Source of the DNA: Auanema rhodensis
Lineage: Eukaryota; Animalia; Nematoda
Assembly (NCBI GenBank): GCA_964057225.1
Contig: OZ059900.1
Location: 1,302,001 to 1,366,000 of the forward strand
Direction of reading: 5' to 3'
Length of the DNA: 64,000 bases
The translations under genes were made by a program, and so were the position numbers. The notes beneath the pieces were generated by a model. That model did not search any database, was not told the origin of the DNA, and saw nothing but the letters and a program-made list of their open reading frames with translations. Within the stretch, counting starts at the first letter, position 1. Every line of letters begins with the position of its first letter. Shown in pieces: positions 9,907-39,640 of this stretch.

Positions 9907-9916
9907 CGTAAAAAGG
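9907..9916 (+). repeat. 100-bp deletion junction, copy 2
   Basis: cgtaaaaagg; 9594->10189 = 595. Confidence 0.95.
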
Positions 9917-12900
9917 TCGAAAATAGAAAGAATTTTTGAAATTTACGAGTTTTGAGTCTAATTTGGCTAAATCGCTCATATATATGATCAAAAGCATAGT
10001 TTTATTGTCTATAACAACAAAAGTCATCAATTAAACGCTAGTGATGTTTAAATACTGAATTTCACTCAAATAGCATTACTACACTAAGTATGGTCGTTTT
10101 TATGCCTTTAACACCATATACTCACCGATTTTTGGTACAAAATCTGTGATACTCGTAAATTTTGATCATATTCGGTGAGATTCGAGAATCAAACACACAA
10201 TACACGAAATAAGTTTATTTTTACGAGTTTGCACTGATATTTATTCATTTTGATCAAAAAAGGTCGAAAATAGAAAGAATTTTTGAAATTTCCGAGTTTT
10301 GAGTCTAATTTGGCTAAATCGCTCATATATATGATCAAAAGCATAGTTTCATTGTCTATGACAACAAAAGTCATCAATTAAACGCTAGTGATGTTTAAAT
10401 ACTGAATTTCGCTCAAATAGCATTACTACACTAAGTATGGTCGTTTTTATGCCTTTAACACCATATACTCACCGATTTTTGGTACAAAATCTGTAATACT
10501 CGTAAATTTTGATCATATTCGTTAAGATTTGAGAATCAAACATACAATACACAAAATCAGTCTATTTTTATGAGCTTGCACTGATATATATTCATTTTGA
10601 TCAAAAAAGGTCGAAAATAGAAAGAATTTTTGAAATTTACGAGTTTTGAGTCTAATTTGGCTAAATCGCTCATATATATGATCAGAAGCATAGTTTTATT
10701 GTCTATGACAACAAAAGCCATTAATTAAACACTAATGATGTTTAAATCACTAAATTTCGCTCAAATAGCATTACTACACTAAGTATGGTCGTTTTTATGC
10801 CTTTAACACCATATACTCACCGATTTTTGGTACAAAATCTGTAATACTTGTAAATTTTGATCATATTCGTTAAGATTCGAGAATCAAACACATAATACAC
10901 GAAATAAGTCTATTTTTATGAGTTTGCACTGATATTTATTCATTTTGATCAAAAAAGGTCGAAAATAGAAAGAATTTTTGAATTTTCCGAGTTTTGAGTC
11001 CAATTGGGCTAAATCGCTCATATATATGATCAAAAGCATAGTTTTACTGTCTATGATAACAAAAGTCTTCAAATATACACTAATAATGTGTAAATCACTG
11101 AATTTCACTCAAATAGCTTTACTACACTAAGTATGGTCGTTTTTATGCCTTTAACACCATATACTCACCGATTTTTGGTACAAAATCTGTAATACTCGTA
11201 AATTTTGATCATATTCGTTTAGATTTGAGAATCAAACATACAATACACAAAATCAGTCTATTTTTATGAGCTTGCACTGATATATATTCATTTTGATCAA
11301 AAAAGGTCGAAAATAGAAAGAATTTTTGAAATTTCCGAGTTTTGAGTCCAATTTGGCTAAATCGCTCATATATATGATCAAAAGCATAGTTCTATTGTCT
11401 ATAACAACAAAAGTCTTCAATTAAACGCTAGTGATGTTTAAATACTGAATTTCGCTCAAATAGCATTACTACACTAAGTATGGTCGTTTTTATGCCTTTA
11501 ACACCATATACTCACCGATTTTTGGTACAAAATCTGTAATACTCGTAAGTTTTGATCATATTCGTTAAGATTTGAGAATCAAACATACAATACACAAAAT
11601 CAGTCTATTTTTATGAGCTTGCACTGCTATATATTCATTTTGATCAAAAAAGGTCGAAAATAGAAAGAATTTTTGAAATTTACGAGTTTTGAGCCTAATT
11701 TGGCTAAATCGCTCATATATATGATCAGAAGCATAGTTTTATTGTCTATGACAACAAAAGCCATTAATTAAACACTAATGATGTTTAAATCACTAAATTT
11801 CGCTCAAATAGCATTACTACACTAAGTATGGTCGTTTTTATGCCTTTAACACCATATACTCACCGATTTTTGGTACAAAATCTGTAATACTTGTAAATTT
11901 TGATCATATTCGTTAAGATTCGAGAATCAAACACATAATACACGAAATAAGTCTATTTTTATGAGTTTGCACTGATATTTATTCATTTTGATCAAAAAAG
12001 GTCGAAAATAGAAAGAATTTTTGAATTTTCCGAGTTTTGAGTCCAATTGGGCTTAATCGCTCATATATATGATCAAAAGCATAGTTTTACTGTCTATGAT
12101 AACAAAAGTCTTCAAATATACACTAATAATGTGTAAATCACTGAATTTCACTCAAATAGCTTTACTACACTAAGTATGGTCGTTTTTATGCCTTTAACAC
12201 CATATACTCACCGATTTTTGGTACAAAATCTGTAATACTCGTAAATTTTGATCATATTCGTTTAGATTTGAGAATCAAACATACAATACACAAAATCAGT
12301 CTATTTTTATGAGCTTGCACTGATATATATTCATTTTGATCAAAAAAGGTCGAAAATAGAAAGAATTTTTGAAATTTCCGAGTTTTGAGTCCAATTTGGC
12401 TAAATCGCTCATATATATGATCAAAAGCATAGTTTTACTGTCTATGATAACAAAAGTCTTCAAATATACACTAATAATGTGTAAATCACTGAATTTCACT
12501 CAAATAGCTTTACTACACTAAGTATGGTCGTTTTTATGCCTTTAACACCATATACTCACCGATTTTTGGTACAAAATCTGTAATACTTGTAAATTTCGAT
12601 CATATTCGTTAAGATTTGAGAATCAAACACATAATACACGAAATAAGTCTATTTTTACAAGTTTGCACTGATATTTATTCATTTTGATCAAAAAAGGTCG
12701 AAAATAGAAAGAATTTTTGAAATTTCCGAGTTTTGAGTCCAATTTGGCTAAATCGCTCATATATATGATCAAAAGCATAGTTCTATTGTCTATAACAACA
12801 AAAGTCTTCAATTAAACGCTAGTGATGTTTTAATACTGAATTTCGCTCAAATAGCATTACTACACTAAGTATGGTCGTTTTTATGCCTTTAACACCATAT

Positions 12901-13977
12901 ACTCACCGATTTTTGGTACAAAATCTGTAATACTCGTAAATTTTGATCATATTCGTTAAGATTTGAGAATCAAACATACAATACACGAAATCAGTCTATT
13001 TTTATGAGCTTGCACTGATATATATTCATTTTGATCAAAAAAGGTCGAAAATAGAAAGAATTTTTGAAATTTACGAGTTTTGAGTCTAATTTGGCTAAAT
13101 CGCTCATATATATGATCAGAAGCATAGTTTTATTGTCTATGACAACAAAAATCATCAATTAAACGCTAGTGATGTTTAAATACTGATTTTCGCTCAAATA
13201 GCATTACTACACTAAGTATGGTCGTTTTTGTGCCTTTAACACCATATACTCACCGATTTTTGGTACAAAATCTGTAATACTTGTAAATTTTGATCATATT
13301 CGTTAAGATTCGAGAATCAAACACATAATACACGAAAAAAGTCTATTTTTATGAGCTTGCACTGATATATATTCATTTTGATCAAAAAAGGTCGAAAATA
13401 GAAAGAATTTTTGAAATTTACGAGTTTTGAGTCTAATTTGGCTAAATCGCTCATATATATGATCAGAAGCATAGTTTTATTGTCTATGACAACAAAAGTC
13501 ATTAATTAAACACTAATGATGTTTAAATCACTAAATTTCGCTCAAATAGCATTACTACACTAAGTATGGTCGTTTTTATGCCTTTAACACCATATACTCA
13601 CCGATTTTTGGTACAAAATCTGTAATACTTGTAAATTTTGATCATATTCGTTAAGATTCGAGAATCAAACACATAATACACGAAAAAAGTCTATTTTTAT
13701 GAGTTTGCACTGATATTTATTCATTTTGATCAAAAAAGGTCGAAAATAGAAAGAATTTTTGAATTTTCCGAGTTTTGAGTCCAATTGGGCTAAATCGCTC
13801 ATATATATGATCAAAAGCATAGTTTTACTGTCTATGATAACAAAAGTCTTCAAATATACACTAATAATGTGTAAATCACTGAATTTCACTCAAATAGCTT
13901 TACTACACAAAGTATGGTCGTTTTTATGCCTTTAACACCATATACTCACCGATTTTTGGTACAAAATCTGTAATACT

Positions 13978-13987
13978 CGTAAAAAGG
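13978..13987 (+). repeat. 100-bp deletion junction, copy 3
   Basis: cgtaaaaagg; 13665->14260 = 595. Confidence 0.95.
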
Positions 13988-15267
13988 TCGAAAATAGAAA
14001 GAATTTTTGAAATTTACGAGTTTTGAGTCTAATTTGGCTAAATCGCTCATATATATGATCAAAAGCATAGTTTTATTGTCTATAACAACAAAAGTCATCA
14101 ATTAAACGCTAGTGATGTTTAAATACTGAATTTCACTCAAATAGCATTACTACACTAAGTATGGTCGTTTTTATGCCTTTAACACCATATACTCACCGAT
14201 TTTTGGTACAAAATCTGTGATACTCGTAAATTTTGATCATATTCGGTGAGATTCGAGAATCAAACACACAATACACGAAATAAGTTTATTTTTACGAGTT
14301 TGCACTGATATTTATTCATTTTGATCAAAAAAGGTCGAAAATAGAAAGAATTTTTGAAATTTCCGAGTTTTGAGTCTAATTTGGCTAAATCGCTCATATA
14401 TATGATCAAAAGCATAGTTTCATTGTCTATGACAACAAAAGTCATCAATTAAACGCTAGTGATGTTTAAATACTGAATTTCGCTCAAATAGCATTACTAC
14501 ACTAAGTATGGTCGTTTTTATGCCTTTAACACCATATACTCACCGATTTTTGGTACAAAATCTGTAATACTCGTAAATTTTGATCATATTCGTTAAGATT
14601 TGAGAATCAAACATACAATACACAAAATCAGTCTATTTTTATGAGCTTGCACTGATATATATTCATTTTGATCAAAAAAGGTCGAAAATAGAAAGAATTT
14701 TTGAAATTTACGAGTTTTGAGTCTAATTTGGCTAAATCGCTCATATATATGATCAGAAGCATAGTTTCATTGTCTATGACAACAAAAGCCATTAATTAAA
14801 CACTAATGATGTTTAAATCACTAAATTTCGCTCAAATAGCATTACTACACTAAGTATGGTCGTTTTTATGCCTTTAACACCATATACTCACCGATTTTTG
14901 GTACAAAATCTGTAATACTTGTAAATTTTGATCATATTCGTTAAGATTCGAGAATCAAACACATAATACACGAAATAAGTCTATTTTTATGAGTTTGCAC
15001 TGATATTTATTCATTTTGATCAAAAAAGGTCGAAAATAGAAAGAATTTTTGAATTTTCCGAGTTTTGAGTCCAATTGGGCTAAATCGCTCATATATATGA
15101 TCAAAAGCATAGTTTTACTGTCTATGATAACAAAAGTCTTCAAATATACACTAATAATGTGTAAATCACTGAATTTCACTCAAATAGCTTTACTACACTA
15201 AGTATGGTCGTTTTTATGCCTTTAACACCATATACTCACCGATTTTTGGTACAAAATCTGTAATACT

Positions 15268-15277
15268 CGTAAAAAGG
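15268..15277 (+). repeat. 100-bp deletion junction, copy 4
   Basis: cgtaaaaagg; 14955->15550 = 595. Confidence 0.95.
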
Positions 15278-17634
15278 TCGAAAATAGAAAGAATTTTTGA
15301 AATTTACGAGTTTTGAGTCTAATTTGGCTAAATCGCTCATATATATGATCAAAAGCATAGTTTTATTGTCTATAACAACAAAAGTCATCAATTAAACGCT
15401 AGTGATGTTTAAATACTGAATTTCACTCAAATAGCATTACTACACTAAGTATGGTCGTTTTTATGCCTTTAACACCATATACTCACCGATTTTTGGTACA
15501 AAATCTGTGATACTCGTAAATTTTGATCATATTCGGTGAGATTCGAGAATCAAACACACAATACACGAAATAAGTTTATTTTTACGAGTTTGCACTGATA
15601 TTTATTCATTTTGATCAAAAAAGGTCGAAAATAGAAAGAATTTTTGAAATTTCCGAGTTTTGAGTCTAATTTGGCTAAATCGCTCATATATATGATCAAA
15701 AGCATAGTTTCATTGTCTATGACAACAAAAGTCATCAATTAAACGCTAGTGATGTTTAAATACTGAATTTCGCTCAAATAGCATTACTACACTAAGTATG
15801 GTCGTTTTTATGCCTTTAACACCATATACTCACCGATTTTTGGTACAAAATCTGTAATACTCGTAAATTTTGATCATATTCGTTAAGATTTGAGAATCAA
15901 ACATACAATACACAAAATCAGTCTATTTTTATGAGCTTGCACTGATATATATTCATTTTGATCAAAAAAGGTCGAAAATAGAAAGAATTTTTGAAATTTA
16001 CGAGTTTTGAGTCTAATTTGGCTAAATCGCTCATATATATGATCAGAAGCATAGTTTTATTGTCTATGACAACAAAAGCCATTAATTAAACACTAATGAT
16101 GTTTAAATCACTAAATTTCGCTCAAATAGCATTACTACACTAAGTATGGTCGTTTTTATGCCTTTAACACCATATACTCACCGATTTTTGGTACAAAATC
16201 TGTAATACTTGTAAATTCTGATCATATTCGTTAAGATTCGAGAATCAAACACATAATACACGAAATAAGTCTATTTTTATGAGTTTGCACTGATATTTAT
16301 TCATTTTGATCAAAAAAGGTCGAAAATAGAAAGAATTTTTGAATTTTCCGAGTTTTGAGTCCAATTGGGCTAAATCGCTCATATATATGATCAAAAGCAT
16401 AGTTTTACTGTCTATGATAACAAAAGTCTTCAAATATACACTAATAATGTGTAAATCACTGAATTTCACTCAAATAGCTTTACTACACTAAGTATGGTCG
16501 TTTTTATGCCTTTAACACCATATACTCACCGATTTTTGGTACAAAATCTGTAATACTCGTAAATTTTGATCATATTCGTTTAGATTTGAGAATCAAACAT
16601 ACAATACACAAAATCAGTCTATTTTTATGAGCTTGCACTGATATATATTCATTTTGATCAAAAAAGGTCGAAAATAGAAAGAATTTTTGAAATTTCCGAG
16701 TTTTGAGTCCAATTTGGCTCAATCGCTCATATATATGATCAAAAGCATAGTTCTATTGTCTATAACAACAAAAGTCTTCAATTAAACGCTAGTGATGTTT
16801 AAATACTGAATTTCGCTCAAATAGCATTACTACACTAAGTATGGTCGTTTTTATGCCTTTAACACCATATACTCACCGATTTTTGGTACAAAATCTGTAA
16901 TACTCGTAAGTTTTGATCATATTCGTTAAGATTTGAGAATCAAACATACAATACACAAAATCAGTCTATTTTTATGAGCTTGCACTGATATTTATTCATT
17001 TTGATCAAAAAAGGTCGAAAATAGAAAGAATTTTTGAATTTTCCGAGTTTTGAGTCCAATTGGGCTAAATCGCTCATATATATGATCAAAAGCATAGTTT
17101 TACTGTCTATGATAACAAAAGTCTTCAAATATACACTAATAATGTGTAAATCACTGAATTTCACTCAAATAGCTTTACTACACTAAGTATGGTCGTTTTT
17201 ATGCCTTTAACACCATATACTCACCGATTTTTGGTACAAAATCTGTAATACTCGTAAATTTTGATCATATTCGTTTAGATTTGAGAATCAAACATACAAT
17301 ACACAAAATCAGTCTATTTTTATGAGCTTGCACTGATATATATTCATTTTGATCAAAAAAGGTCGAAAATAGAAAGAATTTTTGAAATTTCCGAGTTTTG
17401 AGTCCAATTTGGCTAAATCGCTCATATATATGATCAAAAGCATAGTTCTATTGTCTATAACAACAAAAGTCATTAATTAAACACTAATGATGTTTAAATA
17501 CTGATTTTCGCTCAAATAGCATTACTACACTAAGTATGGTCGTTTTTATACCTTCAACACCATATACTCACCGATTTTTGGTACAAAATCTGTGATACTC
17601 GTAAATTTCGATCATATTCGTTAAGATTCGAGAA

Positions 17635-20600
17635 TCAAACACACAATACACGAAATGAGTTTATTTTCACGAGTTTGCACTGATATTTATTCATTTTGAT
17701 CAAAAAAGGTCGAAAATAGAAAGAATTTTTGAATTTTCCGAGTTTTGAGTCCAATTGGGCTAAATCGCTCATATATATGATCAAAAGCATAGTTTTACTG
17801 TCTATGATAACAAAAGTCTTCAAATATACACTAGTAATGATTAAATCACTGAATTTCACTCAAATAGCATTACTACACTAAGTATGGTCGTTTTTATGCC
17901 TTTAACACCATATACTCACCGATTTTTGGTACAAAATCTGTAATACTCGTAAATTTTGATCATGTTTGTTAAGATTTGAGAATCAAACATACAATACACA
18001 AAATCAGTCTATTTTTATGAGCTTGCACTGATATATATTGATTTTGATCAAAAAAGGTCGAAAATAGAAAGAATTTTTGAAATTTACGAGTTTTGAGTCT
18101 AATTTGGCTAAATCGCTCATATATATGATCAGAAGCATAGTTTTATTGTCTATGACAACAAAAGTCATTAATTAAACACTAATGATGTTTAAATACTGAT
18201 TTTCGCTCAAATAGCATTACTACACTAAGTATGGTCGTTTTTATACCTTCAACACCATATACTCACCGATTTTTGGTACAAAATCTGTAATACTTGTAAA
18301 TTTCGATCATATTCGTTAAGATTTGAGAATCAAACACATAATACACGAAATAAGTCTATTTTTACAAGTTTGCACTGATATTTATTCATTTTGATCAAAA
18401 AAGGTCGAAAATAGAAAGAATTTTTGAAATTTCCGAGTTTTGAGTCCAATTTGGCTAAATCGCTCATATATATGATCAAAAGCATAGTTCTATTGTCTAT
18501 AACAACAAAAGTCTTCAATTAAACGCTAGTGATGTTTTAATACTGAATTTCGCTCAAATAGCATTACTACACTAAGTATGGTCGTTTTTATGCCTTTAAC
18601 ACCATATACTCACCGATTTTTGGTACAAAATCTGTAATACTTGTAAATTTTGATCATATTCGTTAAGATTCGAGAATCAAACACATAATACACGAAAAAA
18701 GTCTATTTTTATGAGTTTGCACTGATATTTATTCATTTTGATCAAAAAAGGTCGAAAATAGAAAGAATTTTTGAATTTTCCGAGTTTTGAGTCCAATTGG
18801 GCTAAATCGCTCATATATATGATCAAAAGCATAGTTTTACTGTCTATGATAACAAAAGTCTTCAAATATACACTAATAATGTGTAAATCACTGAATTTCA
18901 CTCAAATAGCTTTACTACACTAAGTATGGTCGTTTTTATGCCTTTAACACCATATACTCACCGATTTTTGGTACAAAATCTGTGATACTCGTAAATTTCG
19001 ATCATATTCGTTAAGATTCGAGAATCAAACACACAATACACGAAATGAGTTTATTTTCACGAGTTTGCACTGATATTTATTCATTTTGATCAAAAAAGGT
19101 CGAAAATAGAAAGAATTTTTGAATTTTCCGAGTTTTGAGTCCAATTGGGCTAAATCGCTCATATATATGATCAAAAGCATAGTTTTACTGTCTATGATAA
19201 CAAAAGTCTTCAAATATACACTAGTAATGATTAAATCACTGAATTTCACTCAAATAGCATTACTACACTAAGTATGGTCGTTTTTATGCCTTTAACACCA
19301 TATACTCACCGATTTTTGGTACAAAATCTGTAATACTCGTAAATTTTGATCATGTTTGTTAAGATTTGAGAATCAAACATACAATACACAAAATCAGTCT
19401 ATTTTTATGAGCTTGCACTGATATATATTGATTTTGATCAAAAAAGGTCGAAAATAGAAAGAATTTTTGAAATTTACGAGTTTTGAGTCTAATTTGGCTA
19501 AATCGCTCATATATATGATCAGAAGCATAGTTTTATTGTCTATGACAACAAAAGTCATTAATTAAACACTAATGATGTTTAAATACTGATTTTCGCTCAA
19601 ATAGCATTACTACACTAAGTATGGTCGTTTTTATACCTTCAACACCATATACTCACCGATTTTTGGTACAAAATCTGTAATACTTGTAAATTTCGATCAT
19701 ATTCGTTAAGATTTGAGAATCAAACACATAATACACGAAATAAGTCTATTTTTACAAGTTTGCACTGATATTTATTCATTTTGATCAAAAAAGGTCGAAA
19801 ATAGAAAGAATTTTTGAAATTTCCGAGTTTTGATTCCAATTTGGCTAAATCGCTCATATATATGATCAAAAGCATAGTTCTATTGTCTATAACAACAAAA
19901 GTCTTCAATTAAACGCTAGTGATGTTTTAATACTGAATTTCGCTCAAATAGCATTACTACACTAAGTATGGTCGTTTTTATGCCTTTAACACCATATACT
20001 CACCGATTTTTGGTACAAAATCTGTAATACTTGTAAATTTTGATCATATTCGTTAAGATTCGAGAATCAAACACATAATACACGAAAAAAGTCTATTTTT
20101 ATGAGTTTGCACTGATATTTATTCATTTTGATCAAAAAAGGTCGAAAATAGAAAGAATTTTTGAATTTTCCGAGTTTTGAGTCCAATTGGGCTAAATCGC
20201 TCATATATATGATCAAAAGCATAGTTTTACTGTCTATGATAACAAAAGTCTTCAAATATACACTAATAATGTGTAAATACTGATTTTCGCTCAAATAGCA
20301 TTACTACACTAAGTATGGTCGTTTTTATACCTTCAACACCATATACTCACCGATTTTTGGTACAAAATCTGTGATACTCGTAAATTTTGATCATTTCCGT
20401 TAAGATTCAAGAATCAAACACACAATACACGAAATAAGTTCATTTTTACAAGTTTGCACTGATATTTATTCATTTTGATCAAAAAAGGTCGAAAATAGAA
20501 AGAATTTTTGAAATTTACGAGTTTTGAGTCTAATTTGGCTAAATCGCTCATATATATGATCAGAAGCATAGTTTTATTGTCTATGACAACAAAAGCCATT

Positions 20601-22940: not shown

Positions 22941-24740
22941 TGAAATTTCCGAGTTTTGATTCCAATTTGGCTAAATCGCTCATATATATGATCAAAAGCA
23001 TAGTTCTATTGTCTATAACAACAAAAGTCTTCAATTAAACGCTAGTGATGTTTTAATACTGAATTTCGCTCAAATAGCATTACTACACTAAGTATGGTCG
23101 TTTTTATACCTTCAACACCATATACTCACCGATTTTTGGTACAAAATCTGTAATACTTGTAAATTTCGATCATATTCGTTAAGATTTGAGAATCAAACAC
23201 ATAATACACGAAATAAGTCTATTTTTACAAGTTTGCACTGATATTTATTCATTTTGATCAAAAAAGGTCGAAAATAGAAAGAATTTTTGAAATTTCCGAG
23301 TTTTGATTCCAATTTGGCTAAATCGCTCATATATATGATCAAAAGCATAGTTCTATTGTCTATAACAACAAAAGTCTTCAATTAAACGCTAGTGATGTTT
23401 TAATACTGAATTTCGCTCAAATAGCATTACTACACTAAGTATGGTCGTTTTTATGCCTTTAACACCATATACTCACCGATTTTTGGTACAAAATCTGTAA
23501 TACTTGTAAATTTTGATCATATTCGTTAAGATTCGAGAATCAAACACATAATACACGAAAAAAGTCTATTTTTATGAGTTTGCACTGATATTTATTCATT
23601 TTGATCAAAAAAGGTCGAAAATAGAAAGAATTTTTGAATTTTCCGAGTTTTGAGTCCAATTGGGCTAAATCGCTCATATATATGATCAAAAGCATAGTTT
23701 TACTGTCTATGATAACAAAAGTCTTCAAATATACACTAATAATGTGTAAATACTGATTTTCGCTCAAATAGCATTACTACACTAAGTATGGTCGTTTTTA
23801 TACCTTCAACACCATATACTCACCGATTTTTGGTACAAAATCTGTGATACTCGTAAATTTTGATCATTTCCGTTAAGATTCAAGAATCAAACACACAATA
23901 CACGAAATAAGTTCATTTTTACAAGTTTGCACTGATATTTATTCATTTTGATCAAAAAAGGTCGAAAATAGAAAGAATTTTTGAAATTTACGAGTTTTGA
24001 GTCTAATTTGGCTAAATCGCTCATATATATGATCAGAAGCATAGTTTTATTGTCTATGACAACAAAAGCCATTAATTAAACACTAATGATGTTTAAATCA
24101 CTAAATTTCGCTCAAATAGCATTACTACACTAAGTATGGTCGTTTTTATGCCTTTAACACCATATACTCACCGATTTTTGGTACAAAATCTGTAATACTT
24201 GTAAATTTTGATCATATTCGTTAAGATTCGAGAATCAAACACATAATACACGAAATAAGTCTATTTTTATGAGTTTGCACTGATATTTATTCATTTTGAT
24301 CAAAAAAGGTCGAAAATAGAAAGAATTTTTGAAATTTCCGAGTTTTGAGTCCAATTTGGCTAAATCGCTCATATATATGATCAAAAGCATAGTTCTATTG
24401 TCTATAACAACAAAAGTCTTCAATTAAACGCTAGTGATGTTTTAATACTGAATTTCGCTCAAATAGCATTACTACACTAAGTATGGTCGTTTTTATGCCT
24501 TTAACACCATATACTCACCGATTTTTGGTACAAAATCTGTAATACTTGTAAATTTTGATCATATTCGTTAAGATTCGAGAATCAAACACATAATACACGA
24601 AAAAAGTCTATTTTTATGAGTTTGCACTGATATTTATTCATTTTGATCAAAAAAGGTCGAAAATAGAAAGAATTTTTGAAATTTACGAGTTTTGAGTCTA
24701 ATTTGGCTAAATCGCTCATATATATGATCAGAAGCATAGT

Positions 24741-24771
24741 TTTATTGTCTATTAAAACATCACTAGCGTTT
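24741..24771. other. Left inversion junction with 3-bp microhomology (TAT, 24750-24752)
   Basis: The sequence is tttattgtc[tat]taaaacatcactagcgttt. A forward monomer would continue tat-gacaac, and the reverse monomer would be preceded by cag-tat. Confidence 0.92.
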
Positions 24772-27700
24772 AATTGAAGACTTTTGTTGTTATAGACAAT
24801 AGAACTATGCTTTTGATCATATATATGAGCGATTTAGCCAAATTGGACTCAAAACTCGGAAAATTCAAAAATTCTTTCTATTTTCGACCTTTTTTGATCA
24901 AAATGAATAAATATCAGTGCAAACTCGTGAAAATAAACTCATTTCGTGTATTGTGTGTTTGATTCTCGAATCTTAACGAATATGATCGAAATTTACGAGT
25001 ATCACAGATTTTGTACCAAAAATCGGTGAGTATATGGTGTTGAAGGTATAAAAACGACCATACTTAGTGTAGTAATGCTATTTGAGCGAAAATCAGTATT
25101 TACACATTATTAGTGTATATTTGAAGACTTTTGTTATCATAGACAGTAAAACTATGCTTTTGATCATATATATGAGCGATTTAGCCAAATTAGACTCAAA
25201 ACTCGTAAATTTCAAAAATTCTTTCTATTTTCGACCTTTTTTGATCAAAATGAATAAATATCAGTGCAAACTTGTAAAAATGAACTTATTTCGTGTATTG
25301 TGTGTTTGATTCTTGAATCTTAACGGAAATGATCAAAATTTACGAGTATCACAGATTTTGTACCAAAAATCGGTGAGTATATGGTGTTGAAGGTATAAAA
25401 ACGACCATACTTAGTGTAGTAATGCTATTTGAGCGAAATTTAGTGATTTAAACATCATTAGTGTTTAATTAATGGCTTTTGTTGTCATAGACAATAAAAC
25501 TATGCTTCTGATCATATATATGAGCGATTTAGCCAAATTAGACTCAAAACTCGTAAATTTCAAAAATTCTTTCTATTTTCGACCTTTTTTGATCAAAATG
25601 AATAAATATCAGTGCAAACTTGTAAAAATGAACTTATTTCGTGTATTGTGTGTTTGATTCTTGAATCTTAACGGAAATGATCAAAATTTACGAGTATCAC
25701 AGATTTTGTACCAAAAATCGGTGAGTATATGGTGTTGAAGGTATAAAAACGACCATACTTAGTGTAGTAATGCTATTTGAGCGAAAATCAGTATTTACAC
25801 ATTATTAGTGTATATTTGAAGACTTTTGTTATCATAGACAGTAAAACTATGCTTTTGATCATATATATGAGCGATTTAGCCCAATTGGACTCAAAACTCG
25901 GAAAATTCAAAAATTCTTTCTATTTTCGACCTTTTTTGATCAAAATGAATAAATATCAGTGCAAACTCATAAAAATAGACTTTTTTCGTGTATTATGTGT
26001 TTGATTCTCGAATCTTAACGAATATGATCAAAATTTACAAGTATTACAGATTTTGTACCAAAAATCGGTGAGTATATGGTGTTAAAGGCATAAAAACGAC
26101 CATACTTAGTGTAGTAATGCTATTTGAGCGAAATTCAGTATTAAAACATCACTAGCGTTTAATTGAAGACTTTTGTTGTTATAGACAATAGAACTATGCT
26201 TTTGATCATATATATGAGCGATTTAGCCAAATTGGAATCAAAACTCGGAAATTTCAAAAATTCTTTCTATTTTCGACCTTTTTTGATCAAAATGAATAAA
26301 TATCAGTGCAAACTTGTAAAAATAGACTTATTTCGTGTATTATGTGTTTGATTCTCAAATCTTAACGAATATGATCGAAATTTACAAGTATTACAGATTT
26401 TGTACCAAAAATCGGTGAGTATATGGTGTTGAAGGTATAAAAACGACCATACTTAGTGTAGTAATGCTATTTGAGCGAAAATCAGTATTTAAACATCATT
26501 AGTGTTTAATTAATGACTTTTGTTGTCATAGACAATAAAACTATGCTTCTGATCATATATATGAGCGATTTAGCCAAATTAGACTCAAAACTCGTAAATT
26601 TCAAAAATTCTTTCTATTTTCGACCTTTTTTGATCAAAATCAATATATATCAGTGCAAGCTCATAAAAATAGACTGATTTTGTGTATTGTATGTTTGATT
26701 CTCAAATCTTAACAAACATGATCAAAATTTACGAGTATTACAGATTTTGTACCAAAAATCGGTGAGTATATGGTGTTAAAGGCATAAAAACGACCATACT
26801 TAGTGTAGTAATGCTATTTGAGTGAAATTCAGTGATTTAATCATTACTAGTGTATATTTGAAGACTTTTGTTATCATAGACAGTAAAACTATGCTTTTGA
26901 TCATATATATGAGCGATTTAGCCCAATTGGACTCAAAACTCGGAAAATTCAAAAATTCTTTCTATTTTCGACCTTTTTTGATCAAAATGAATAAATATCA
27001 GTGCAAACTCGTGAAAATAAACTCATTTCGTGTATTGTGTGTTTGATTCTCGAATCTTAACGAATATGATCGAAATTTACGAGTATCACAGATTTTGTAC
27101 CAAAAATCGGTGAGTATATGGTGTTAAAGGCATAAAAACGACCATACTTAGTGTAGTAAAGCTATTTGAGTGAAATTCAGTGATTTACACATTATTAGTG
27201 TATATTTGAAGACTTTTGTTATCATAGACAGTAAAACTATGCTTTTGATCATATATATGAGCGATTTAGCCCAATTGGACTCAAAACTCGGAAAATTCAA
27301 AAATTCTTTCTATTTTCGACCTTTTTTGATCAAAATGAATAAATATCAGTGCAAACTCATAAAAATAGACTTTTTTCGTGTATTATGTGTTTGATTCTCG
27401 AATCTTAACGAATATGATCAAAATTTACAAGTATTACAGATTTTGTACCAAAAATCGGTGAGTATATGGTGTTAAAGGCATAAAAACGACCATACTTAGT
27501 GTAGTAATGCTATTTGAGCGAAATTCAGTATTAAAACATCACTAGCGTTTAATTGAAGACTTTTGTTGTTATAGACAATAGAACTATGCTTTTGATCATA
27601 TATATGAGCGATTTAGCCAAATTGGACTCAAAACTCGGAAAATTCAAAAATTCTTTCTATTTTCGACCTTTTTTGATCAAAATGAATAAATATCAGTGCA

Positions 27701-30700
27701 AACTCGTGAAAATAAACTCATTTCGTGTATTGTGTGTTTGATTCTCGAATCTTAACGAATATGATCGAAATTTACGAGTATCACAGATTTTGTACCAAAA
27801 ATCGGTGAGTATATGGTGTTGAAGGTATAAAAACGACCATACTTAGTGTAGTAATGCTATTTGAGCGAAAATCAGTATTTACACATTATTAGTGTATATT
27901 TGAAGACTTTTGTTATCATAGACAGTAAAACTATGCTTTTGATCATATATATGAGCGATTTAGCCCAATTGGACTCAAAACTCGGAAAATTCAAAAATTC
28001 TTTCTATTTTCGACCTTTTTTGATCAAAATGAATAAATATCAGTGCAAACTCATAAAAATAGACTTATTTCGTGTATTATGTGTTTGATTCTCGAATCTT
28101 AACGAATATGATCAAAATTTACAAGTATTACAGATTTTGTACCAAAAATCGGTGAGTATATGGTGTTAAAGGCATAAAAACGACCATACTTAGTGTAGTA
28201 ATGCTATTTGAGCGAAATTTAGTGATTTAAACATCATTAGTGTTTAATTAATGGCTTTTGTTGTCATAGACAATAAAACTATGCTTCTGATCATATATAT
28301 GAGCGATTTAGCCAAATTAGACTCAAAACTCGTAAATTTCAAAAATTCTTTCTATTTTCGACCTTTTTTGATCAAAATGAATAAATATCAGTGCAAACTT
28401 GTAAAAATGAACTTATTTCGTGTATTGTGTGTTTGATTCTTGAATCTTAACGGAAATGATCAAAATTTACGAGTATCACAGATTTTGTACCAAAAATCGG
28501 TGAGTATATGGTGTTGAAGGTATAAAAACGACCATACTTAGTGTAGTAATGCTATTTGAGCGAAAATCAGTATTTACACATTATTAGTGTATATTTGAAG
28601 ACTTTTGTTATCATAGACAGTAAAACTATGCTTTTGATCATATATATGAGCGATTTAGCCCAATTGGACTCAAAACTCGGAAAATTCAAAAATTCTTTCT
28701 ATTTTCGACCTTTTTTGATCAAAATGAATAAATATCAGTGCAAACTCATAAAAATAGACTTTTTTCGTGTATTATGTGTTTGATTCTCGAATCTTAACGA
28801 ATATGATCAAAATTTACAAGTATTACAGATTTTGTACCAAAAATCGGTGAGTATATGGTGTTAAAGGCATAAAAACGACCATACTTAGTGTAGTAATGCT
28901 ATTTGAGCGAAATTCAGTATTAAAACATCACTAGCGTTTAATTGAAGACTTTTGTTGTTATAGACAATAGAACTATGCTTTTGATCATATATATGAGCGA
29001 TTTAGCCAAATTGGAATCAAAACTCGGAAATTTCAAAAATTCTTTCTATTTTCGACCTTTTTTGATCAAAATGAATAAATATCAGTGCAAACTTGTAAAA
29101 ATAGACTTATTTCGTGTATTATGTGTTTGATTCTCAAATCTTAACGAATATGATCGAAATTTACAAGTATTACAGATTTTGTACCAAAAATCGGTGAGTA
29201 TATGGTGTTGAAGGTATAAAAACGACCATACTTAGTGTAGTAATGCTATTTGAGCGAAAATCAGTATTTAAACATCATTAGTGTTTAATTAATGACTTTT
29301 GTTGTCATAGACAATAAAACTATGCTTCTGATCATATATATGAGCGATTTAGCCAAATTAGACTCAAAACTCGTAAATTTCAAAAATTCTTTCTATTTTC
29401 GACCTTTTTTGATCAAAATCAATATATATCAGTGCAAGCTCATAAAAATAGACTGATTTTGTGTATTGTATGTTTGATTCTCAAATCTTAACAAACATGA
29501 TCAAAATTTACGAGTATTACAGATTTTGTACCAAAAATCGGTGAGTATATGGTGTTAAAGGCATAAAAACGACCATACTTAGTGTAGTAATGCTATTTGA
29601 GTGAAATTCAGTGATTTAATCATTACTAGTGTATATTTGAAGACTTTTGTTATCATAGACAGTAAAACTATGCTTTTGATCATATATATGAGCGATTTAG
29701 CCCAATTGGACTCAAAACTCGGAAAATTCAAAAATTCTTTCTATTTTCGACCTTTTTTGATCAAAATGAATAAATATCAGTGCAAACTCGTGAAAATAAA
29801 CTCATTTCGTGTATTGTGTGTTTGATTCTCGAATCTTAACGAATATGATCGAAATTTACGAGTATCACAGATTTTGTACCAAAAATCGGTGAGTATATGG
29901 TGTTAAAGGCATAAAAACGACCATACTTAGTGTAGTAAAGCTATTTGAGTGAAATTCAGTGATTTACACATTATTAGTGTATATTTGAAGACTTTTGTTA
30001 TCATAGACAGTAAAACTATGCTTTTGATCATATATATGAGCGATTTAGCCCAATTGGACTCAAAACTCGGAAAATTCAAAAATTCTTTCTATTTTCGACC
30101 TTTTTTGATCAAAATGAATAAATATCAGTGCAAACTCATAAAAATAGACTTTTTTCGTGTATTATGTGTTTGATTCTCGAATCTTAACGAATATGATCAA
30201 AATTTACAAGTATTACAGATTTTGTACCAAAAATCGGTGAGTATATGGTGTTAAAGGCATAAAAACGACCATACTTAGTGTAGTAATGCTATTTGAGCGA
30301 AATTCAGTATTAAAACATCACTAGCGTTTAATTGAAGACTTTTGTTGTTATAGACAATAGAACTATGCTTTTGATCATATATATGAGCGATTTAGCCAAA
30401 TTGGACTCAAAACTCGGAAATTTCAAAAATTCTTTCTATTTTCGACCTTTTTTGATCAAAATGAATAAATATCAGTGCAAACTTGTAAAAATAGACTTAT
30501 TTCGTGTATTATGTGTTTGATTCTCAAATCTTAACGAATATGATCGAAATTTACAAGTATTACAGATTTTGTACCAAAAATCGGTGAGTATATGGTGTTG
30601 AAGGTATAAAAACGACCATACTTAGTGTAGTAATGCTATTTGAGCGAAAATCAGTATTTAAACATCATTAGTGTTTAATTAATGACTTTTGTTGTCATAG

Positions 30701-33572
30701 ACAATAAAACTATGCTTCTGATCATATATATGAGCGATTTAGCCAAATTAGACTCAAAACTCGTAAATTTCAAAAATTCTTTCTATTTTCGACCTTTTTT
30801 GATCAAAATCAATATATATCAGTGCAAGCTCATAAAAATAGACTGATTTTGTGTATTGTATGTTTGATTCTCAAATCTTAACAAACATGATCAAAATTTA
30901 CGAGTATTACAGATTTTGTACCAAAAATCGGTGAGTATATGGTGTTAAAGGCATAAAAACGACCATACTTAGTGTAGTAATGCTATTTGAGTGAAATTCA
31001 GTGATTTAATCATTACTAGTGTATATTTGAAGACTTTTGTTATCATAGACAGTAAAACTATGCTTTTGATCATATATATGAGCGATTTAGCCCAATTGGA
31101 CTCAAAACTCGGAAAATTCAAAAATTCTTTCTATTTTCGACCTTTTTTGATCAAAATGAATAAATATCAGTGCAAACTCGTGAAAATAAACTCATTTCGT
31201 GTATTGTGTGTTTGATTCTCGAATCTTAACGAATATGATCGAAATTTACGAGTATCACAGATTTTGTACCAAAAATCGGTGAGTATATGGTGTTGAAGGT
31301 ATAAAAACGACCATACTTAGTGTAGTAATGCTATTTGAGCGAAAATCAGTATTTAAACATCATTAGTGTTTAATTAATGACTTTTGTTGTTATAGACAAT
31401 AGAACTATGCTTTTGATCATATATATGAGCGATTTAGCCAAATTGGACTCAAAACTCGGAAATTTCAAAAATTCTTTCTATTTTCGACCTTTTTTGATCA
31501 AAATGAATATATATCAGTGCAAGCTCATAAAAATAGACTGATTTTGTGTATTGTATGTTTGATTCTCAAATCTAAACGAATATGATCAAAATTTACGAGT
31601 ATTACAGATTTTGTACCAAAAATCGGTGAGTATATGGTGTTAAAGGCATAAAAACGACCATACTTAGTGTAGTAAAGCTATTTGAGTGAAATTCAGTGAT
31701 TTACACATTATTAGTGTATATTTGAAGACTTTTGTTATCATAGACAGTAAAACTATGCTTTTGATCATATATATGAGCGATTTAGCCCAATTGGACTCAA
31801 AACTCGGAAAATTCAAAAATTCTTTCTATTTTCGACCTTTTTTGATCAAAATGAATAAATATCAGTGCAAGCTCATAAAAATAGACTGATTTTGTGTATT
31901 GTATGTTTGATTCACAAATCTTAACGAATATGATCAAAACTTACGAGTATTACAGATTTTGTACCAAAAATCGGTGAGTATATGGTGTTAAAGGCATAAA
32001 AACGACCATACTTAGTGTAGTAATGCTATTTGAGCGAAATTCAGTATTTAAACATCACTAGCGTTTAATTGAAGACTTTTGTTGTTATAGACAATAGAAC
32101 TATGCTTTTGATCATATATATGAGCGATTGAGCCAAATTGGACTCAAAACTCGGAAATTTCAAAAATTCTTTCTATTTTCGACCTTTTTTGATCAAAATG
32201 AATATATATCAGTGCAAGCTCATAAAAATAGACTGATTTTGTGTATTGTATGTTTGATTCTCAAATCTAAACGAATATGATCAAAATTTACGAGTATTAC
32301 AGATTTTGTACCAAAAATCGGTGAGTATATGGTGTTAAAGGCATAAAAACGACCATACTTAGTGTAGTAAAGCTATTTGAGTGAAATTCAGTGATTTACA
32401 CATTATTAGTGTATATTTGAAGACTTTTGTCATCATAGACAGTAAAACTATGCTTTTGATCATATATATGAGCGATTTAGCCCAATTGGACTCAAAACTC
32501 GGAAAATTCAAAAATTCTTTCTATTTTCGACCTTTTTTGATCAAAATGAATAAATATCAGTGCAAACTCATAAAAATAGACTTATTTCGTGTATTATGTG
32601 TTTGATTCTCGAATCTTAACGAATATGATCAGAATTTACAAGTATTACAGATTTTGTACCAAAAATCGGTGAGTATATGGTGTTAAAGGCATAAAAACGA
32701 CCATACTTAGTGTAGTAATGCTATTTGAGCGAAATTTAGTGATTTAAACATCATTAGTGTTTAATTAATGGCTTTTGTTGTCATAGACAATAAAACTATG
32801 CTTCTGATCATATATATGAGCGATTTAGCCAAATTAGACTCAAAACTCGTAAATTTCAAAAATTCTTTCTATTTTCGACCTTTTTTGATCAAAATGAATA
32901 TATATCAGTGCAAGCTCATAAAAATAGACTGATTTTGTGTATTGTATGTTTGATTCTCAAATCTTAACGAATATGATCAAAATTTACGAGTATTACAGAT
33001 TTTGTACCAAAAATCGGTGAGTATATGGTGTTAAAGGCATAAAAACGACCATACTTAGTGTAGTAATGCTATTTGAGCGAAATTCAGTATTTAAACATCA
33101 CTAGCGTTTAATTGATGACTTTTGTTGTCATAGACAATGAAACTATGCTTTTGATCATATATATGAGCGATTTAGCCAAATTAGACTCAAAACTCGGAAA
33201 TTTCAAAAATTCTTTCTATTTTCGACCTTTTTTGATCAAAATGAATAAATATCAGTGCAAACTCGTAAAAATAAACTTATTTCGTGTATTGTGTGTTTGA
33301 TTCTCGAATCTCACCGAATATGATCAAAATTTACGAGTATCACAGATTTTGTACCAAAAATCGGTGAGTATATGGTGTTAAAGGCATAAAAACGACCATA
33401 CTTAGTGTAGTAATGCTATTTGAGTGAAATTCAGTATTTAAACATCACTAGCGTTTAATTGATGACTTTTGTTGTTATAGACAATAAAACTATGCTTTTG
33501 ATCATATATATGAGCGATTTAGCCAAATTAGACTCAAAACTCGTAAATTTCAAAAATTCTTTCTATTTTCGA

Positions 33573-33582
33573 CCTTTTTACG
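33573..33582 (-). repeat. 100-bp deletion junction, copy 5 (inverted; mirror of 15268-15277)
   Basis: cctttttacg. Confidence 0.95.
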
Positions 33583-34862
33583 AGTATTACAGATTTTGTA
33601 CCAAAAATCGGTGAGTATATGGTGTTAAAGGCATAAAAACGACCATACTTAGTGTAGTAAAGCTATTTGAGTGAAATTCAGTGATTTACACATTATTAGT
33701 GTATATTTGAAGACTTTTGTTATCATAGACAGTAAAACTATGCTTTTGATCATATATATGAGCGATTTAGCCCAATTGGACTCAAAACTCGGAAAATTCA
33801 AAAATTCTTTCTATTTTCGACCTTTTTTGATCAAAATGAATAAATATCAGTGCAAACTCATAAAAATAGACTTATTTCGTGTATTATGTGTTTGATTCTC
33901 GAATCTTAACGAATATGATCAAAATTTACAAGTATTACAGATTTTGTACCAAAAATCGGTGAGTATATGGTGTTAAAGGCATAAAAACGACCATACTTAG
34001 TGTAGTAATGCTATTTGAGCGAAATTTAGTGATTTAAACATCATTAGTGTTTAATTAATGGCTTTTGTTGTCATAGACAATAAAACTATGCTTCTGATCA
34101 TATATATGAGCGATTTAGCCAAATTAGACTCAAAACTCGTAAATTTCAAAAATTCTTTCTATTTTCGACCTTTTTTGATCAAAATGAATATATATCAGTG
34201 CAAGCTCATAAAAATAGACTGATTTTGTGTATTGTATGTTTGATTCTCAAATCTTAACGAATATGATCAAAATTTACGAGTATTACAGATTTTGTACCAA
34301 AAATCGGTGAGTATATGGTGTTAAAGGCATAAAAACGACCATACTTAGTGTAGTAATGCTATTTGAGCGAAATTCAGTATTTAAACATCACTAGCGTTTA
34401 ATTGATGACTTTTGTTGTCATAGACAATGAAACTATGCTTTTGATCATATATATGAGCGATTTAGCCAAATTAGACTCAAAACTCGGAAATTTCAAAAAT
34501 TCTTTCTATTTTCGACCTTTTTTGATCAAAATGAATAAATATCAGTGCAAACTCGTAAAAATAAACTTATTTCGTGTATTGTGTGTTTGATTCTCGAATC
34601 TCACCGAATATGATCAAAATTTACGAGTATCACAGATTTTGTACCAAAAATCGGTGAGTATATGGTGTTAAAGGCATAAAAACGACCATACTTAGTGTAG
34701 TAATGCTATTTGAGTGAAATTCAGTATTTAAACATCACTAGCGTTTAATTGATGACTTTTGTTGTTATAGACAATAAAACTATGCTTTTGATCATATATA
34801 TGAGCGATTTAGCCAAATTAGACTCAAAACTCGTAAATTTCAAAAATTCTTTCTATTTTCGA

Positions 34863-34872
34863 CCTTTTTACG
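34863..34872 (-). repeat. 100-bp deletion junction, copy 6 (inverted; mirror of 13978-13987)
   Basis: cctttttacg. Confidence 0.95.
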
Positions 34873-37800
34873 AGTATTACAGATTTTGTACCAAAAATCG
34901 GTGAGTATATGGTGTTAAAGGCATAAAAACGACCATACTTTGTGTAGTAAAGCTATTTGAGTGAAATTCAGTGATTTACACATTATTAGTGTATATTTGA
35001 AGACTTTTGTTATCATAGACAGTAAAACTATGCTTTTGATCATATATATGAGCGATTTAGCCCAATTGGACTCAAAACTCGGAAAATTCAAAAATTCTTT
35101 CTATTTTCGACCTTTTTTGATCAAAATGAATAAATATCAGTGCAAACTCATAAAAATAGACTTTTTTCGTGTATTATGTGTTTGATTCTCGAATCTTAAC
35201 GAATATGATCAAAATTTACAAGTATTACAGATTTTGTACCAAAAATCGGTGAGTATATGGTGTTAAAGGCATAAAAACGACCATACTTAGTGTAGTAATG
35301 CTATTTGAGCGAAATTTAGTGATTTAAACATCATTAGTGTTTAATTAATGACTTTTGTTGTCATAGACAATAAAACTATGCTTCTGATCATATATATGAG
35401 CGATTTAGCCAAATTAGACTCAAAACTCGTAAATTTCAAAAATTCTTTCTATTTTCGACCTTTTTTGATCAAAATGAATATATATCAGTGCAAGCTCATA
35501 AAAATAGACTTTTTTCGTGTATTATGTGTTTGATTCTCGAATCTTAACGAATATGATCAAAATTTACAAGTATTACAGATTTTGTACCAAAAATCGGTGA
35601 GTATATGGTGTTAAAGGCACAAAAACGACCATACTTAGTGTAGTAATGCTATTTGAGCGAAAATCAGTATTTAAACATCACTAGCGTTTAATTGATGATT
35701 TTTGTTGTCATAGACAATAAAACTATGCTTCTGATCATATATATGAGCGATTTAGCCAAATTAGACTCAAAACTCGTAAATTTCAAAAATTCTTTCTATT
35801 TTCGACCTTTTTTGATCAAAATGAATATATATCAGTGCAAGCTCATAAAAATAGACTGATTTCGTGTATTGTATGTTTGATTCTCAAATCTTAACGAATA
35901 TGATCAAAATTTACGAGTATTACAGATTTTGTACCAAAAATCGGTGAGTATATGGTGTTAAAGGCATAAAAACGACCATACTTAGTGTAGTAATGCTATT
36001 TGAGCGAAATTCAGTATTAAAACATCACTAGCGTTTAATTGAAGACTTTTGTTGTTATAGACAATAGAACTATGCTTTTGATCATATATATGAGCGATTT
36101 AGCCAAATTGGACTCAAAACTCGGAAATTTCAAAAATTCTTTCTATTTTCGACCTTTTTTGATCAAAATGAATAAATATCAGTGCAAACTTGTAAAAATA
36201 GACTTATTTCGTGTATTATGTGTTTGATTCTCAAATCTTAACGAATATGATCGAAATTTACAAGTATTACAGATTTTGTACCAAAAATCGGTGAGTATAT
36301 GGTGTTAAAGGCATAAAAACGACCATACTTAGTGTAGTAAAGCTATTTGAGTGAAATTCAGTGATTTACACATTATTAGTGTATATTTGAAGACTTTTGT
36401 TATCATAGACAGTAAAACTATGCTTTTGATCATATATATGAGCGATTTAGCCAAATTGGACTCAAAACTCGGAAATTTCAAAAATTCTTTCTATTTTCGA
36501 CCTTTTTTGATCAAAATGAATATATATCAGTGCAAGCTCATAAAAATAGACTGATTTTGTGTATTGTATGTTTGATTCTCAAATCTAAACGAATATGATC
36601 AAAATTTACGAGTATTACAGATTTTGTACCAAAAATCGGTGAGTATATGGTGTTAAAGGCATAAAAACGACCATACTTAGTGTAGTAAAGCTATTTGAGT
36701 GAAATTCAGTGATTTACACATTATTAGTGTATATTTGAAGACTTTTGTTATCATAGACAGTAAAACTATGCTTTTGATCATATATATGAGCGATTAAGCC
36801 CAATTGGACTCAAAACTCGGAAAATTCAAAAATTCTTTCTATTTTCGACCTTTTTTGATCAAAATGAATAAATATCAGTGCAAACTCATAAAAATAGACT
36901 TATTTCGTGTATTATGTGTTTGATTCTCGAATCTTAACGAATATGATCAAAATTTACAAGTATTACAGATTTTGTACCAAAAATCGGTGAGTATATGGTG
37001 TTAAAGGCATAAAAACGACCATACTTAGTGTAGTAATGCTATTTGAGCGAAATTCAGTATTTAAACATCACTAGCGTTTAATTGAAGACTTTTGTTGTTA
37101 TAGACAATAGAACTATGCTTTTGATCATATATATGAGCGATTTAGCCAAATTGGACTCAAAACTCGGAAATTTCAAAAATTCTTTCTATTTTCGACCTTT
37201 TTTGATCAAAATGAATATATATCAGTGCAAGCTCATAAAAATAGACTGATTTTGTGTATTGTATGTTTGATTCTCAAATCTAAACGAATATGATCAAAAT
37301 TTACGAGTATTACAGATTTTGTACCAAAAATCGGTGAGTATATGGTGTTAAAGGCATAAAAACGACCATACTTAGTGTAGTAAAGCTATTTGAGTGAAAT
37401 TCAGTGATTTACACATTATTAGTGTATATTTGAAGACTTTTGTTATCATAGACAGTAAAACTATGCTTTTGATCATATATATGAGCGATTTAGCCCAATT
37501 GGACTCAAAACTCGGAAAATTCAAAAATTCTTTCTATTTTCGACCTTTTTTGATCAAAATGAATAAATATCAGTGCAAACTCATAAAAATAGACTTATTT
37601 CGTGTATTATGTGTTTGATTCTCGAATCTTAACGAATATGATCAAAATTTACAAGTATTACAGATTTTGTACCAAAAATCGGTGAGTATATGGTGTTAAA
37701 GGCATAAAAACGACCATACTTAGTGTAGTAATGCTATTTGAGCGAAATTTAGTGATTTAAACATCATTAGTGTTTAATTAATGGCTTTTGTTGTCATAGA

Positions 37801-39630: not shown

Positions 39631-39640
39631 CCTTTTTACG
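39631..39640 (-). repeat. 100-bp deletion junction, copy 7 (inverted; mirror of 44305-44314)
   Basis: cctttttacg. Confidence 0.95.

Follow-up and report, generated by a model that had tools for sequence, protein, structure and literature searches.

Mirror-image organization of a satellite array

How does a block of satellite DNA come to stand backwards within its own array, as a mirror image of the sequence on either side? The question is raised by the 64-kb stretch of nematode DNA analysed here (the window), the whole of which is made up of one AT-rich, non-coding satellite with a monomer of 347/348 bp. The satellite reads forward from 1 to 24750 (segment A), backwards from 24751 to 41155 (block B) and forward again from 41156 (segment C), with a first junction (J1) between A and B and a second (J2) between B and C. 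The forward anchors in A (n=73) are spaced by 347, 348 or 248 bp only, and all of the 48 reverse anchors (48/48) fall within 24751..41155. Monomer variants of the array are typically about 6% apart. From 42790 to about 54000, C holds a third copy of the super-unit that is shorter and more diverged, and past about 54 kb each monomer is a unique variant. The window holds no open reading frame longer than 101 aa, an Rfam search of 22000-27500 matched no family and a literature search with four monomer fragments matched no paper. The coordinates of all features are collected in Table 1.

Table 1. Features of the satellite array, in order of position along the window
Feature	Position	Strand	Remarks
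Array segment A	1..24752	+	347/348/248-bp monomers; from TRF and the sign of the GC skew
Outer exact tract	10405..11543	+	Pairs with 36959-38097; between it and the core, B cleanly lacks one monomer
Left core arm	11796..22944	+	3 mismatches in 11,149 against the right core arm
Arm difference 1	14768 (pairs with 34082)	.	A: 25-mer unique in the window; B: common state
Arm difference 2	16419 (pairs with 32431)	.	B has a rare state, common only to the paralogous monomer in C (variant 27)
Arm difference 3	16936 (pairs with 31914)	.	B base is a singleton in the whole window
Two-monomer segment in A, missing in B	22919..23612	+	Variants 39 and 10, 694 bp
Direct repeat flanking block B	24426..24680	+	255 bp, exact, with 41156-41410
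Junction J1, forward to reverse	24750..24752	.	TAT assignable to either side (3-bp microhomology); mirror identity at sum 46071 reaches B 24750
Inverted block B	24751..41155	-	16,405 bp; 47 full monomers and two partial ones; from the monomer map
Junction-proximal end of B	24751..25905	-	Exact mirror pieces of A, sum 46071, and a patch
Right core arm	25906..37054	-	Mirror of 11796-22944, coordinate sum 48850
B piece between the C-like and A-like parts	38298..38861	-	Exact mirror of C 50197-50760 over 564 bp
Distal end of B	38862..41155	-	Exact mirror of C 42790-45083, sum 83945; 2,294 bp, 0 mismatches
Junction J2, reverse to forward	41155..41156	.	Blunt; last base of B at phase 16 of a 248-bp-type monomer, first base of C at phase 120
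Array segment C	41156..64000	+	From the anchors and the monomer map
C partner of the distal end of B	42790..45083	+	Exact mirror of 38862-41155

Identity of the mirrored arms

The full monomers of B follow the end of A in mirror order without exception (47/47). An ungapped comparison of the core arms (sum 48850, 11,149 bases) yields an identity of 99.97%, and the three differences that the first-pass annotation had picked out by eye turn out to be the full set, the rest of the arms being identical. The base at 31914 is the only one in B that is a singleton in the window. The arms are also more alike than other array segments of the same length: the 32 core monomers show 3 differences from their mirror partner, whereas no other stretch of 32 monomers, whether in A, B or C, differs from the core at fewer than 579 positions (94.7% identity or less). 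The next-longest near-exact match in the window, searched in any orientation from k-mer-seeded diagonals, measures 2.3 kb, and the core is in length a roughly five-fold outlier among the near-exact repeats of the window. Among the four pairs of SNPs that had been described as private to the arms, those at 12054, 13909 and 16218 indeed occur once forward and once reverse-complemented, whereas the one at 16720 has two further copies in C.

Overall, A and B share about 13.4 kb of sequence with 3 substitutions and two whole-monomer indels. Set against the divergence between variants, this bears out the earlier description of the structure as very recent or actively homogenised. Given an identity of 99.97% over a core of such outlying length, the copying is therefore taken to be recent. 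A comparably long, near-identical direct duplication was not found in the window, and duplication and inversion are therefore most economically seen as one event.

Beyond the core the mirror continues on both sides, as had been proposed, and both extensions are exact: outwards 10405-11543 pairs with 38097-36959 (sum 48502, 0 mismatches) and inwards 23064-24149 pairs with 26480-25395 (sum 49544, 0 mismatches). The inner tract partly echoes an 8-monomer higher-order repeat, in that 23064-24333 is an exact direct copy of 19591-20860. At the deletion in B, variant 43 consists of the head of variant 36 and the tail of variant 37, and in the two-monomer segment of A variant 39 combines the head of variant 10 with the tail of variant 6. 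Every monomer that occurs only in B is a simple recombinant joining two pieces of common variants, which is the outcome expected of slippage between homologous monomers.

Three observations go beyond the first-pass annotation: the first 600 bp on either side of J1 are only about 93% alike when mirrored about the junction, a second strand switch lies at 41155/41156, and the far end of B mirrors the right flank rather than the left. The counterpart of this distal end in A differs from it at 38 positions. Near J1, B 24751-25160 and 25395-25905 exactly mirror A 20911-21320 and 20166-20676, respectively; between them, 25161-25394 is a patch of 234 bp whose copy is shifted by one monomer. B can almost wholly be painted with exact mirror pieces of A and C.

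Patchy identity with sharp tract edges within monomers, and with separate tracts common to A and to C, would also be seen in an older inverted unit whose near-identity to the flanks was kept or made by recent long-tract gene conversion between inverted repeats. We consider such a history quite improbable: a tract of 11-13 kb far exceeds the other exact tracts in the window (2.3 kb or shorter), private mutations, which would betray age, are absent from the unconverted patches, and the inverted length would still have to coincide with the period of the duplication.

Junctions and origin of the reversed block

At both J1 and J2 exact mirror identity starts at the junction base. At J1, B 24750-25160 mirrors A 20911-21321 without a mismatch, and an adjacent inverted copy is likewise present at J2 (38862-41155 against C). 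The mirror partner is reached 3,432 bp past J1 and, across the forward spacer 41156-42789, 1,634 bp past J2; these spacer sizes are model-dependent, since the higher-order repeat allows other registers. With a 3-bp microhomology at J1 and a blunt joint at J2, the geometry of a fold-back with spacer is present twice.

Block B is most likely a very young inverted duplication in a recently amplified, higher-order-repeat part of the array. As to how it arose, we tentatively prefer a recent duplicative double fold-back or template-switching event. From the anatomy, the identities and the junction sequences, all of which are observed directly, we infer the following order of events and enzymology. 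In one replication or repair episode, template switching of the fold-back type would have occurred on both sides of a break or a collapsed fork. Synthesis would have left the left flank at 24752 and restarted 3.4 kb back on the opposite strand via the 3-bp microhomology, after which about 13.4 kb of A would have been copied backwards with three slips between homologous monomers. The right edge would likewise have copied C (1.6-kb spacer, 2.3 + 0.56 kb copied), and the two backward-copied tails may then have joined seamlessly inside homologous monomers. The product would be a 16.4-kb reversed block that mirrors both neighbours. The direct repeat flanking the block fits such a course, as when synthesis resumes just upstream of its point of departure.

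Several observations argue against a double fold-back. Given the low likeness of the innermost 600 bp (about 93%), the fold-back reading needs the 3.4-kb spacer and, in addition, a jump across one higher-order repeat unit of 2,779 bp; it also calls for five or more template legs, and the rare state of B at 16419 is common to C and not to A. The junction geometry is itself weak evidence, because the higher-order repeat offers many alternative exact alignments. Furthermore, joining the junction-proximal partial monomer of B to the first partial monomer of C recreates variant 24 exactly (the two overlap by 21 identical bp), as predicted for an inversion in place.

For such an inversion, a recent tandem duplication of about 17 kb would have given three super-units (the end of A, a direct B and the start of C), of which the middle one became a hybrid of its two neighbours by unequal exchange and was then flipped by two breaks or two template switches. 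Un-inverting B does yield a regular super-repeat order, and B is C-like at its start and A-like for the remainder, in line with the middle unit of an unequal exchange. Nonetheless we find this course rather unlikely. A coincidence would be needed for the flipped length of 16,405 bp to agree with the period of the duplication (17,056 bp, or 16,362 bp in the inner register), a direct duplicate of comparable size and identity is not in the window, and the linkers between the duplicated tracts are non-identical, so that more than one homogenisation event would still be needed. The breakpoints are also non-reciprocal, which bears on the staggered-break version of the inversion. Staggered breaks, as modelled in Drosophila, leave inverted duplications at both breakpoints; here the identical 21-bp sequence is found at both ends of the right breakpoint pair, whereas the left pair overlaps by 81 bp with 6 mismatches and would need a deletion of about 1.7 kb. 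Moreover, simply removing B joins variant 11 to variant 47 with 255 bp of exact continuity. Since the join with B removed is as good as the join with B flipped, we treat both continuities, including the rebuilding of variant 24, as uninformative.

A different type of explanation is that chimeric long reads (one or several), such as the fold-back chimeras that arise in whole-genome amplification, found their way into the assembled array at a place where normal reads cannot contradict them. In one nematode study, palindromic chimeras accounted for 8.8-30.9% of the amplified long-read samples of C. elegans (PMC10450198). They resemble the present block in their fold-back geometry and possibly in having several switches per molecule (PMC10450198); a fold-back with a kilobase spacer and 0-3 bp of microhomology is chimera geometry as well. 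Consensus errors could account for the three differences in 13 kb, and among the public runs (n=12, short contigs with pieces of about 60 nt that mostly place at multiple positions) none of the records listed crosses J1, the holes in depth being uninformative. Still, an artefact appears rather unlikely to us, as a single assembled path would have to contain several internal switches as well as two junctions at a distance of 16.4 kb. The worm arms differ from amplification chimeras (PMC10450198) by their two whole-monomer indels and by one arm difference that equals a genuine rare variant present in C. In addition, the window is without Ns or contig ends, with normal array for 23 kb beyond J2, and flipping B back fails to restore the monomer phase, which speaks against a simple orientation error made in silico.

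Two simpler artefacts were considered separately and are ruled out: a plain flip of the contig in silico, as the monomer phase at J1 is not restored by turning B back, and a single-molecule fold-back chimera centred on J1, as there is a 7% difference between the innermost 600 bp of the two sides.

Comparison with known systems

Hermetz et al. reportedly described, in 2014, fold-back inverted duplications of the human germline with a short single-copy spacer. Block B is similar in that the inverted copy adjoins the original, with a kilobase-scale spacer and a microhomology or blunt junction. In contrast to the human cases it is interstitial in a tandem array and two-ended (mirroring both flanks), shows internal register slips, and is without terminal deletion or telomere healing.

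Primate sex-chromosome palindromes keep an arm identity of 99.9+% through arm-to-arm gene conversion. The arms in the worm are likewise longer than 10 kb and, at 99.97%, more than 99.9% identical. They differ from these palindromes in consisting of non-coding satellite, in their patchy identity, and in lacking both a unique spacer and any sign of long-term maintenance.

The same direct-inverted-direct order, with a middle block that mirrors both neighbours, is found in DUP-TRP/INV-DUP structures and the ODIRA model (Brewer et al. 2024, PMC10766186). Palindromic junctions that are secondarily altered into spacers would suit the worm block. However, the triplication that defines ODIRA is missing, C not being a near-identical third copy: over 32 monomers the core has no better match in C than one of 94.7% (579 differences), against 3 differences between A and B, and a triplication of the ODIRA type is ruled out.

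Human beta-satellite and HSat3 arrays contain hundreds of strand switches or inversions per assembly set, according to a preprint (bioRxiv 10.64898/2026.07.22.740206). There, too, orientation flips within a uniform array, and the flips are seen as by-products of array turnover; compared with the switches covered in the passages considered, the worm block is traceable base by base to both flanks and almost undiverged.

Function and significance

The reversed block is probably a very young rearrangement scar of an already known kind, without any indication of a function. The earlier suggestion of a candidate fragile or functional site, with its link to centromere-specifying dyad symmetry, gains no support from the present analysis. 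Holocentric chromosomes are the rule in nematodes, and the proposal that dyad symmetry specifies centromeres concerns short dyads inside monomers, not arms of 10 kb. The macro-palindrome is a feature on another scale, and as it stands the reversed block has no bearing on centromere specification. The suggestion that the centre folds back when single-stranded holds thermodynamically (-136 kcal/mol for the central 301 nt, z = -29), but is trivial, as any strand switch in a 94%-identical satellite would fold likewise.

It might be argued that double fold-back copying is a recurrent and genuine mode of satellite turnover in this nematode, regularly yielding blocks that mirror both flanks, and that transcripts crossing the junctions fold into long perfect hairpins from which small-RNA silencing of the whole satellite family could start; we deem this very unlikely. 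If the junctions are real, the block provides an unusually clean, almost undiverged record of a strand change in an array, where each reversed piece has a source in the flanks and the slips between homologous monomers are still visible. It would then make a useful worked example, for satellites, of either template switching or inversion. The block is also a test locus for whether such junctions are biology or a systematic assembly artefact.

Array organization and mirror symmetry

The entire 64-kb window consists of a single AT-rich tandem repeat (29% GC), for which Tandem Repeats Finder reports periods of 347/348 bp and, now and then, 248-bp units. Using a 30-nt anchor (at most 4 substitutions allowed) we located the starts of 139 forward and 48 reverse monomers, spaced by 347, 348 or 248 bp only. 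All 48 reverse anchors are confined to 24889-40922 and the GC skew changes sign twice along the window. The forward, reversed and forward segments (A, B and C) meet at the switches J1 (A/B) and J2 (B/C).

Segments and monomer classes of the satellite array (positions in the window)
Feature	Positions	Strand	Basis or remark
Segment A	1-24750	+	monomer anchors, GC skew
Segment B	24751-41155 (16,405 bp)	-	monomer anchors, GC skew
Segment C	41156 onward	+	monomer anchors, GC skew
248-bp monomers	9667-9914, 13738-13985, 15028-15275, 33575-33822, 34865-35112		listed copies
248-bp monomers	39633-39880, 42775-43022, 44065-44312, 46051-46298, and others		listed copies
Hybrid monomers (examples)	36851-37197, 37894-38241, 25237-25584, 22919-23265, 41385-41732		two-piece recombinants

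A 25-kb macro-palindrome at 11796-37054, with near-identical arms of ~11.1 kb, had been claimed in the first-pass annotation. Full comparison of the core arms (11796-22944 against the complement of 37054-25906, coordinate sum 48850) yields 3 mismatches over 11,149 bases (14768, 16419 and 16936), precisely the differences it had named. The outer (10405-11543, sum 48502) and inner (23064-24149, sum 49544) extensions that it proposed align with 0 mismatches, and three of its four 'private SNP' pairs are indeed unique forward/reverse pairs in the window, whereas the remaining one is not. For the comparison with same-length array segments suggested alongside that claim, the 32 core monomers were set against all other 32-monomer stretches in A, B and C, giving 3 differences for the mirror partner and at least 579 for every other stretch (the runner-up, 94.7% identity). 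The next-longest near-exact repeat in the window, in either orientation, measures 2.3 kb. The mirror symmetry is real and lies far above the array background. The 184 monomers in the window represent only 81 distinct variants, and the background itself holds many exact repeats of 1-2.3 kb because of the higher-order structure in this part of the array.

In a monomer-by-monomer alignment every one of the 47 monomers of B has its place in the mirrored succession of the final 49 of A. Between A 10405-24149 and B there are three substitutions and two monomer-level differences, namely a clean one-monomer deletion in B (variant 43 combines the head of variant 36 with the tail of 37) and two additional monomers in A (22919-23612). 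In a switch-centred register the innermost 600 bp on each side are just 93% alike. No base rare in the window occurs in the monomers found only in B; each of these consists of two pieces recombined from common variants. At 14768 A has a 25-mer unique in the window and B the common state, at 16936 the singleton base is on the B side, and at 16419 the rare state of B is seen elsewhere only in a paralogous monomer of C. Since all three are substitutions and none a homopolymer-length change, they look like real changes, with consensus errors as a possible alternative. The nematode mutation rate is roughly 2-3e-9 per site per generation (C. elegans), and 3 differences in ~13.4 kb would correspond to no more than some tens of thousands of generations.

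Junctions and origin of the reversed segment

The far end of B matches C rather than A: over 2,294 bp, 38862-41155 mirrors C 42790-45083 exactly, with 38 positions differing in the A counterpart, and the adjoining 38298-38861 exactly mirrors C 50197-50760. Near J1, 24751-25905 exactly mirrors A 20166-21320 (sum 46071) save for a patch of 234 bp whose copy is shifted by one monomer. At both switches the junction base is the start of exact mirror identity, the partner being offset beyond the junction by 3,432 bp (J1) and 1,634 bp (J2). J1 has a 3-bp microhomology (TAT, 24750-24752) and J2 is a blunt join.

Four histories are all compatible with this structure and, because of the higher-order repeat, difficult to tell apart. 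We tentatively favour an origin of B by duplicative double fold-back or template switching. Such copying would give mirror order and exact identity abutting the junctions, kilobase spacers at both ends and microhomology at a junction; it would also give a 255-bp exact direct repeat on both sides of B, as seen here (24426-24680 = 41156-41410). Recombinant monomers might represent slips between homologous monomers during copying, and the absence of a comparably long direct duplicate in the window is consistent with this origin, which requires at least five template legs.

It is rather unlikely that the middle unit of a recent ~17-kb tandem duplication was inverted in place. This would account for the regular super-repeat order obtained on flipping B back and for the first partial monomers of B and C, which overlap by 21 bp and together restore variant 24 exactly. 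However, the inverted length would equal the duplication period only by chance, continuity is just as good with B removed, and the opposite breakpoint is non-reciprocal (81-bp overlap, 6 mismatches). A reciprocal staggered break therefore fits one breakpoint only, and the two-sided pattern of a staggered-break inversion is not seen here. The structure of a fold-back junction is found at both ends. Patchy identity could also reflect an older inversion with later long-tract arm-to-arm conversion, but this is improbable: the converted tract would be exceptionally long, and length and period would again have to coincide.

An artefact such as a fold-back chimera in the assembly is rather unlikely, on a par with the in-place inversion. 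Such chimeras have the same geometry and are common in long reads from amplified nematode DNA, accounting for 8.8-30.9% of the amplified samples from C. elegans (PMC10450198). Nonetheless, monomer indels and a variant common to B and C set the arms apart, a single assembled path would have to accommodate two junctions and several switches, and monomer phase is not restored when B is flipped back.

Fold-back inverted duplications are well described, and palindromes reaching 99.9+% arm identity occur on sex chromosomes; the locus is an unusually well-preserved example of an already known rearrangement type. Inverted triplications, with the rearrangements that follow them, are likewise an established class (PMC10766186); the locus differs from these because C is not near-identical to the core (best 32-monomer match 94.7%). 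Between 42790 and ~54000, C holds a third copy of the super-unit that is shorter and more diverged. In complete human assemblies satellite strand switches are common and seen as array-expansion by-products, as sketched in bioRxiv 10.64898/2026.07.22.740206.

As single-stranded DNA the central 301 nt fold into a near-continuous hairpin (-136 kcal/mol, z = -29), and a similar hairpin would be expected at any strand switch in a ~94%-identity satellite. The dyad-symmetry proposal for centromeres concerns short dyads inside repeat units, not 10-kb arms.

Public sequencing runs over J1

The satellite is present in 12 public runs from three studies, always as short contigs. Four runs were placed on 22000-27500 as ~60-nt pieces, most with several possible positions; among these no J1-bridging record is listed, and the bin ending at J1 (24576-24759) has depth in the best-matching run only. 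This run may be the source sample. At 24929, in the monomer adjoining J1, the window has G, three of the four runs have A alone and the best-matching run has A at a small minority of depth, which is a strain or copy variant. Zero contigs of the four runs were placed on 22920-23471 and 24392-24575 (trace depth in one, 22920-23103). These stretches are mostly identical to other window copies, and their emptiness probably reflects the way contigs with several placements were assigned, not a real absence.

Monomer variants and other features

No ORF in the window exceeds 101 aa, and no Rfam families were found in 22000-27500. The two 101-aa ORFs (GTG start, minus strand, 59005-59310 and 60048-60353) are spaced by 1,043 bp, or three monomers, and are most likely chance products of the repeat.

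Over 1-54000, its left and middle parts, the window is made up of a small set of monomer variants that recur, and it includes a 2,779-bp repeat of eight monomers (variants 12 5 6 10 13 0 23 24). From ~54 kb to the window end no variant recurs and many monomers carry singleton bases; ~54 kb is the boundary between a young amplified and an older diverged domain. The 248-bp monomer, lacking ~100 bp (alignment columns ~240-340), has a fixed place in the motif '8 4* 2 x' and was seen ten times; it is one propagated deletion variant rather than independent deletions. Switch points of hybrid monomers recur at columns ~190 and ~240, the latter coinciding with the left end of the deletion in the 248-bp variant; this clustering might mark a hotspot of recombination or breakage, or only reflect the placement of informative sites.
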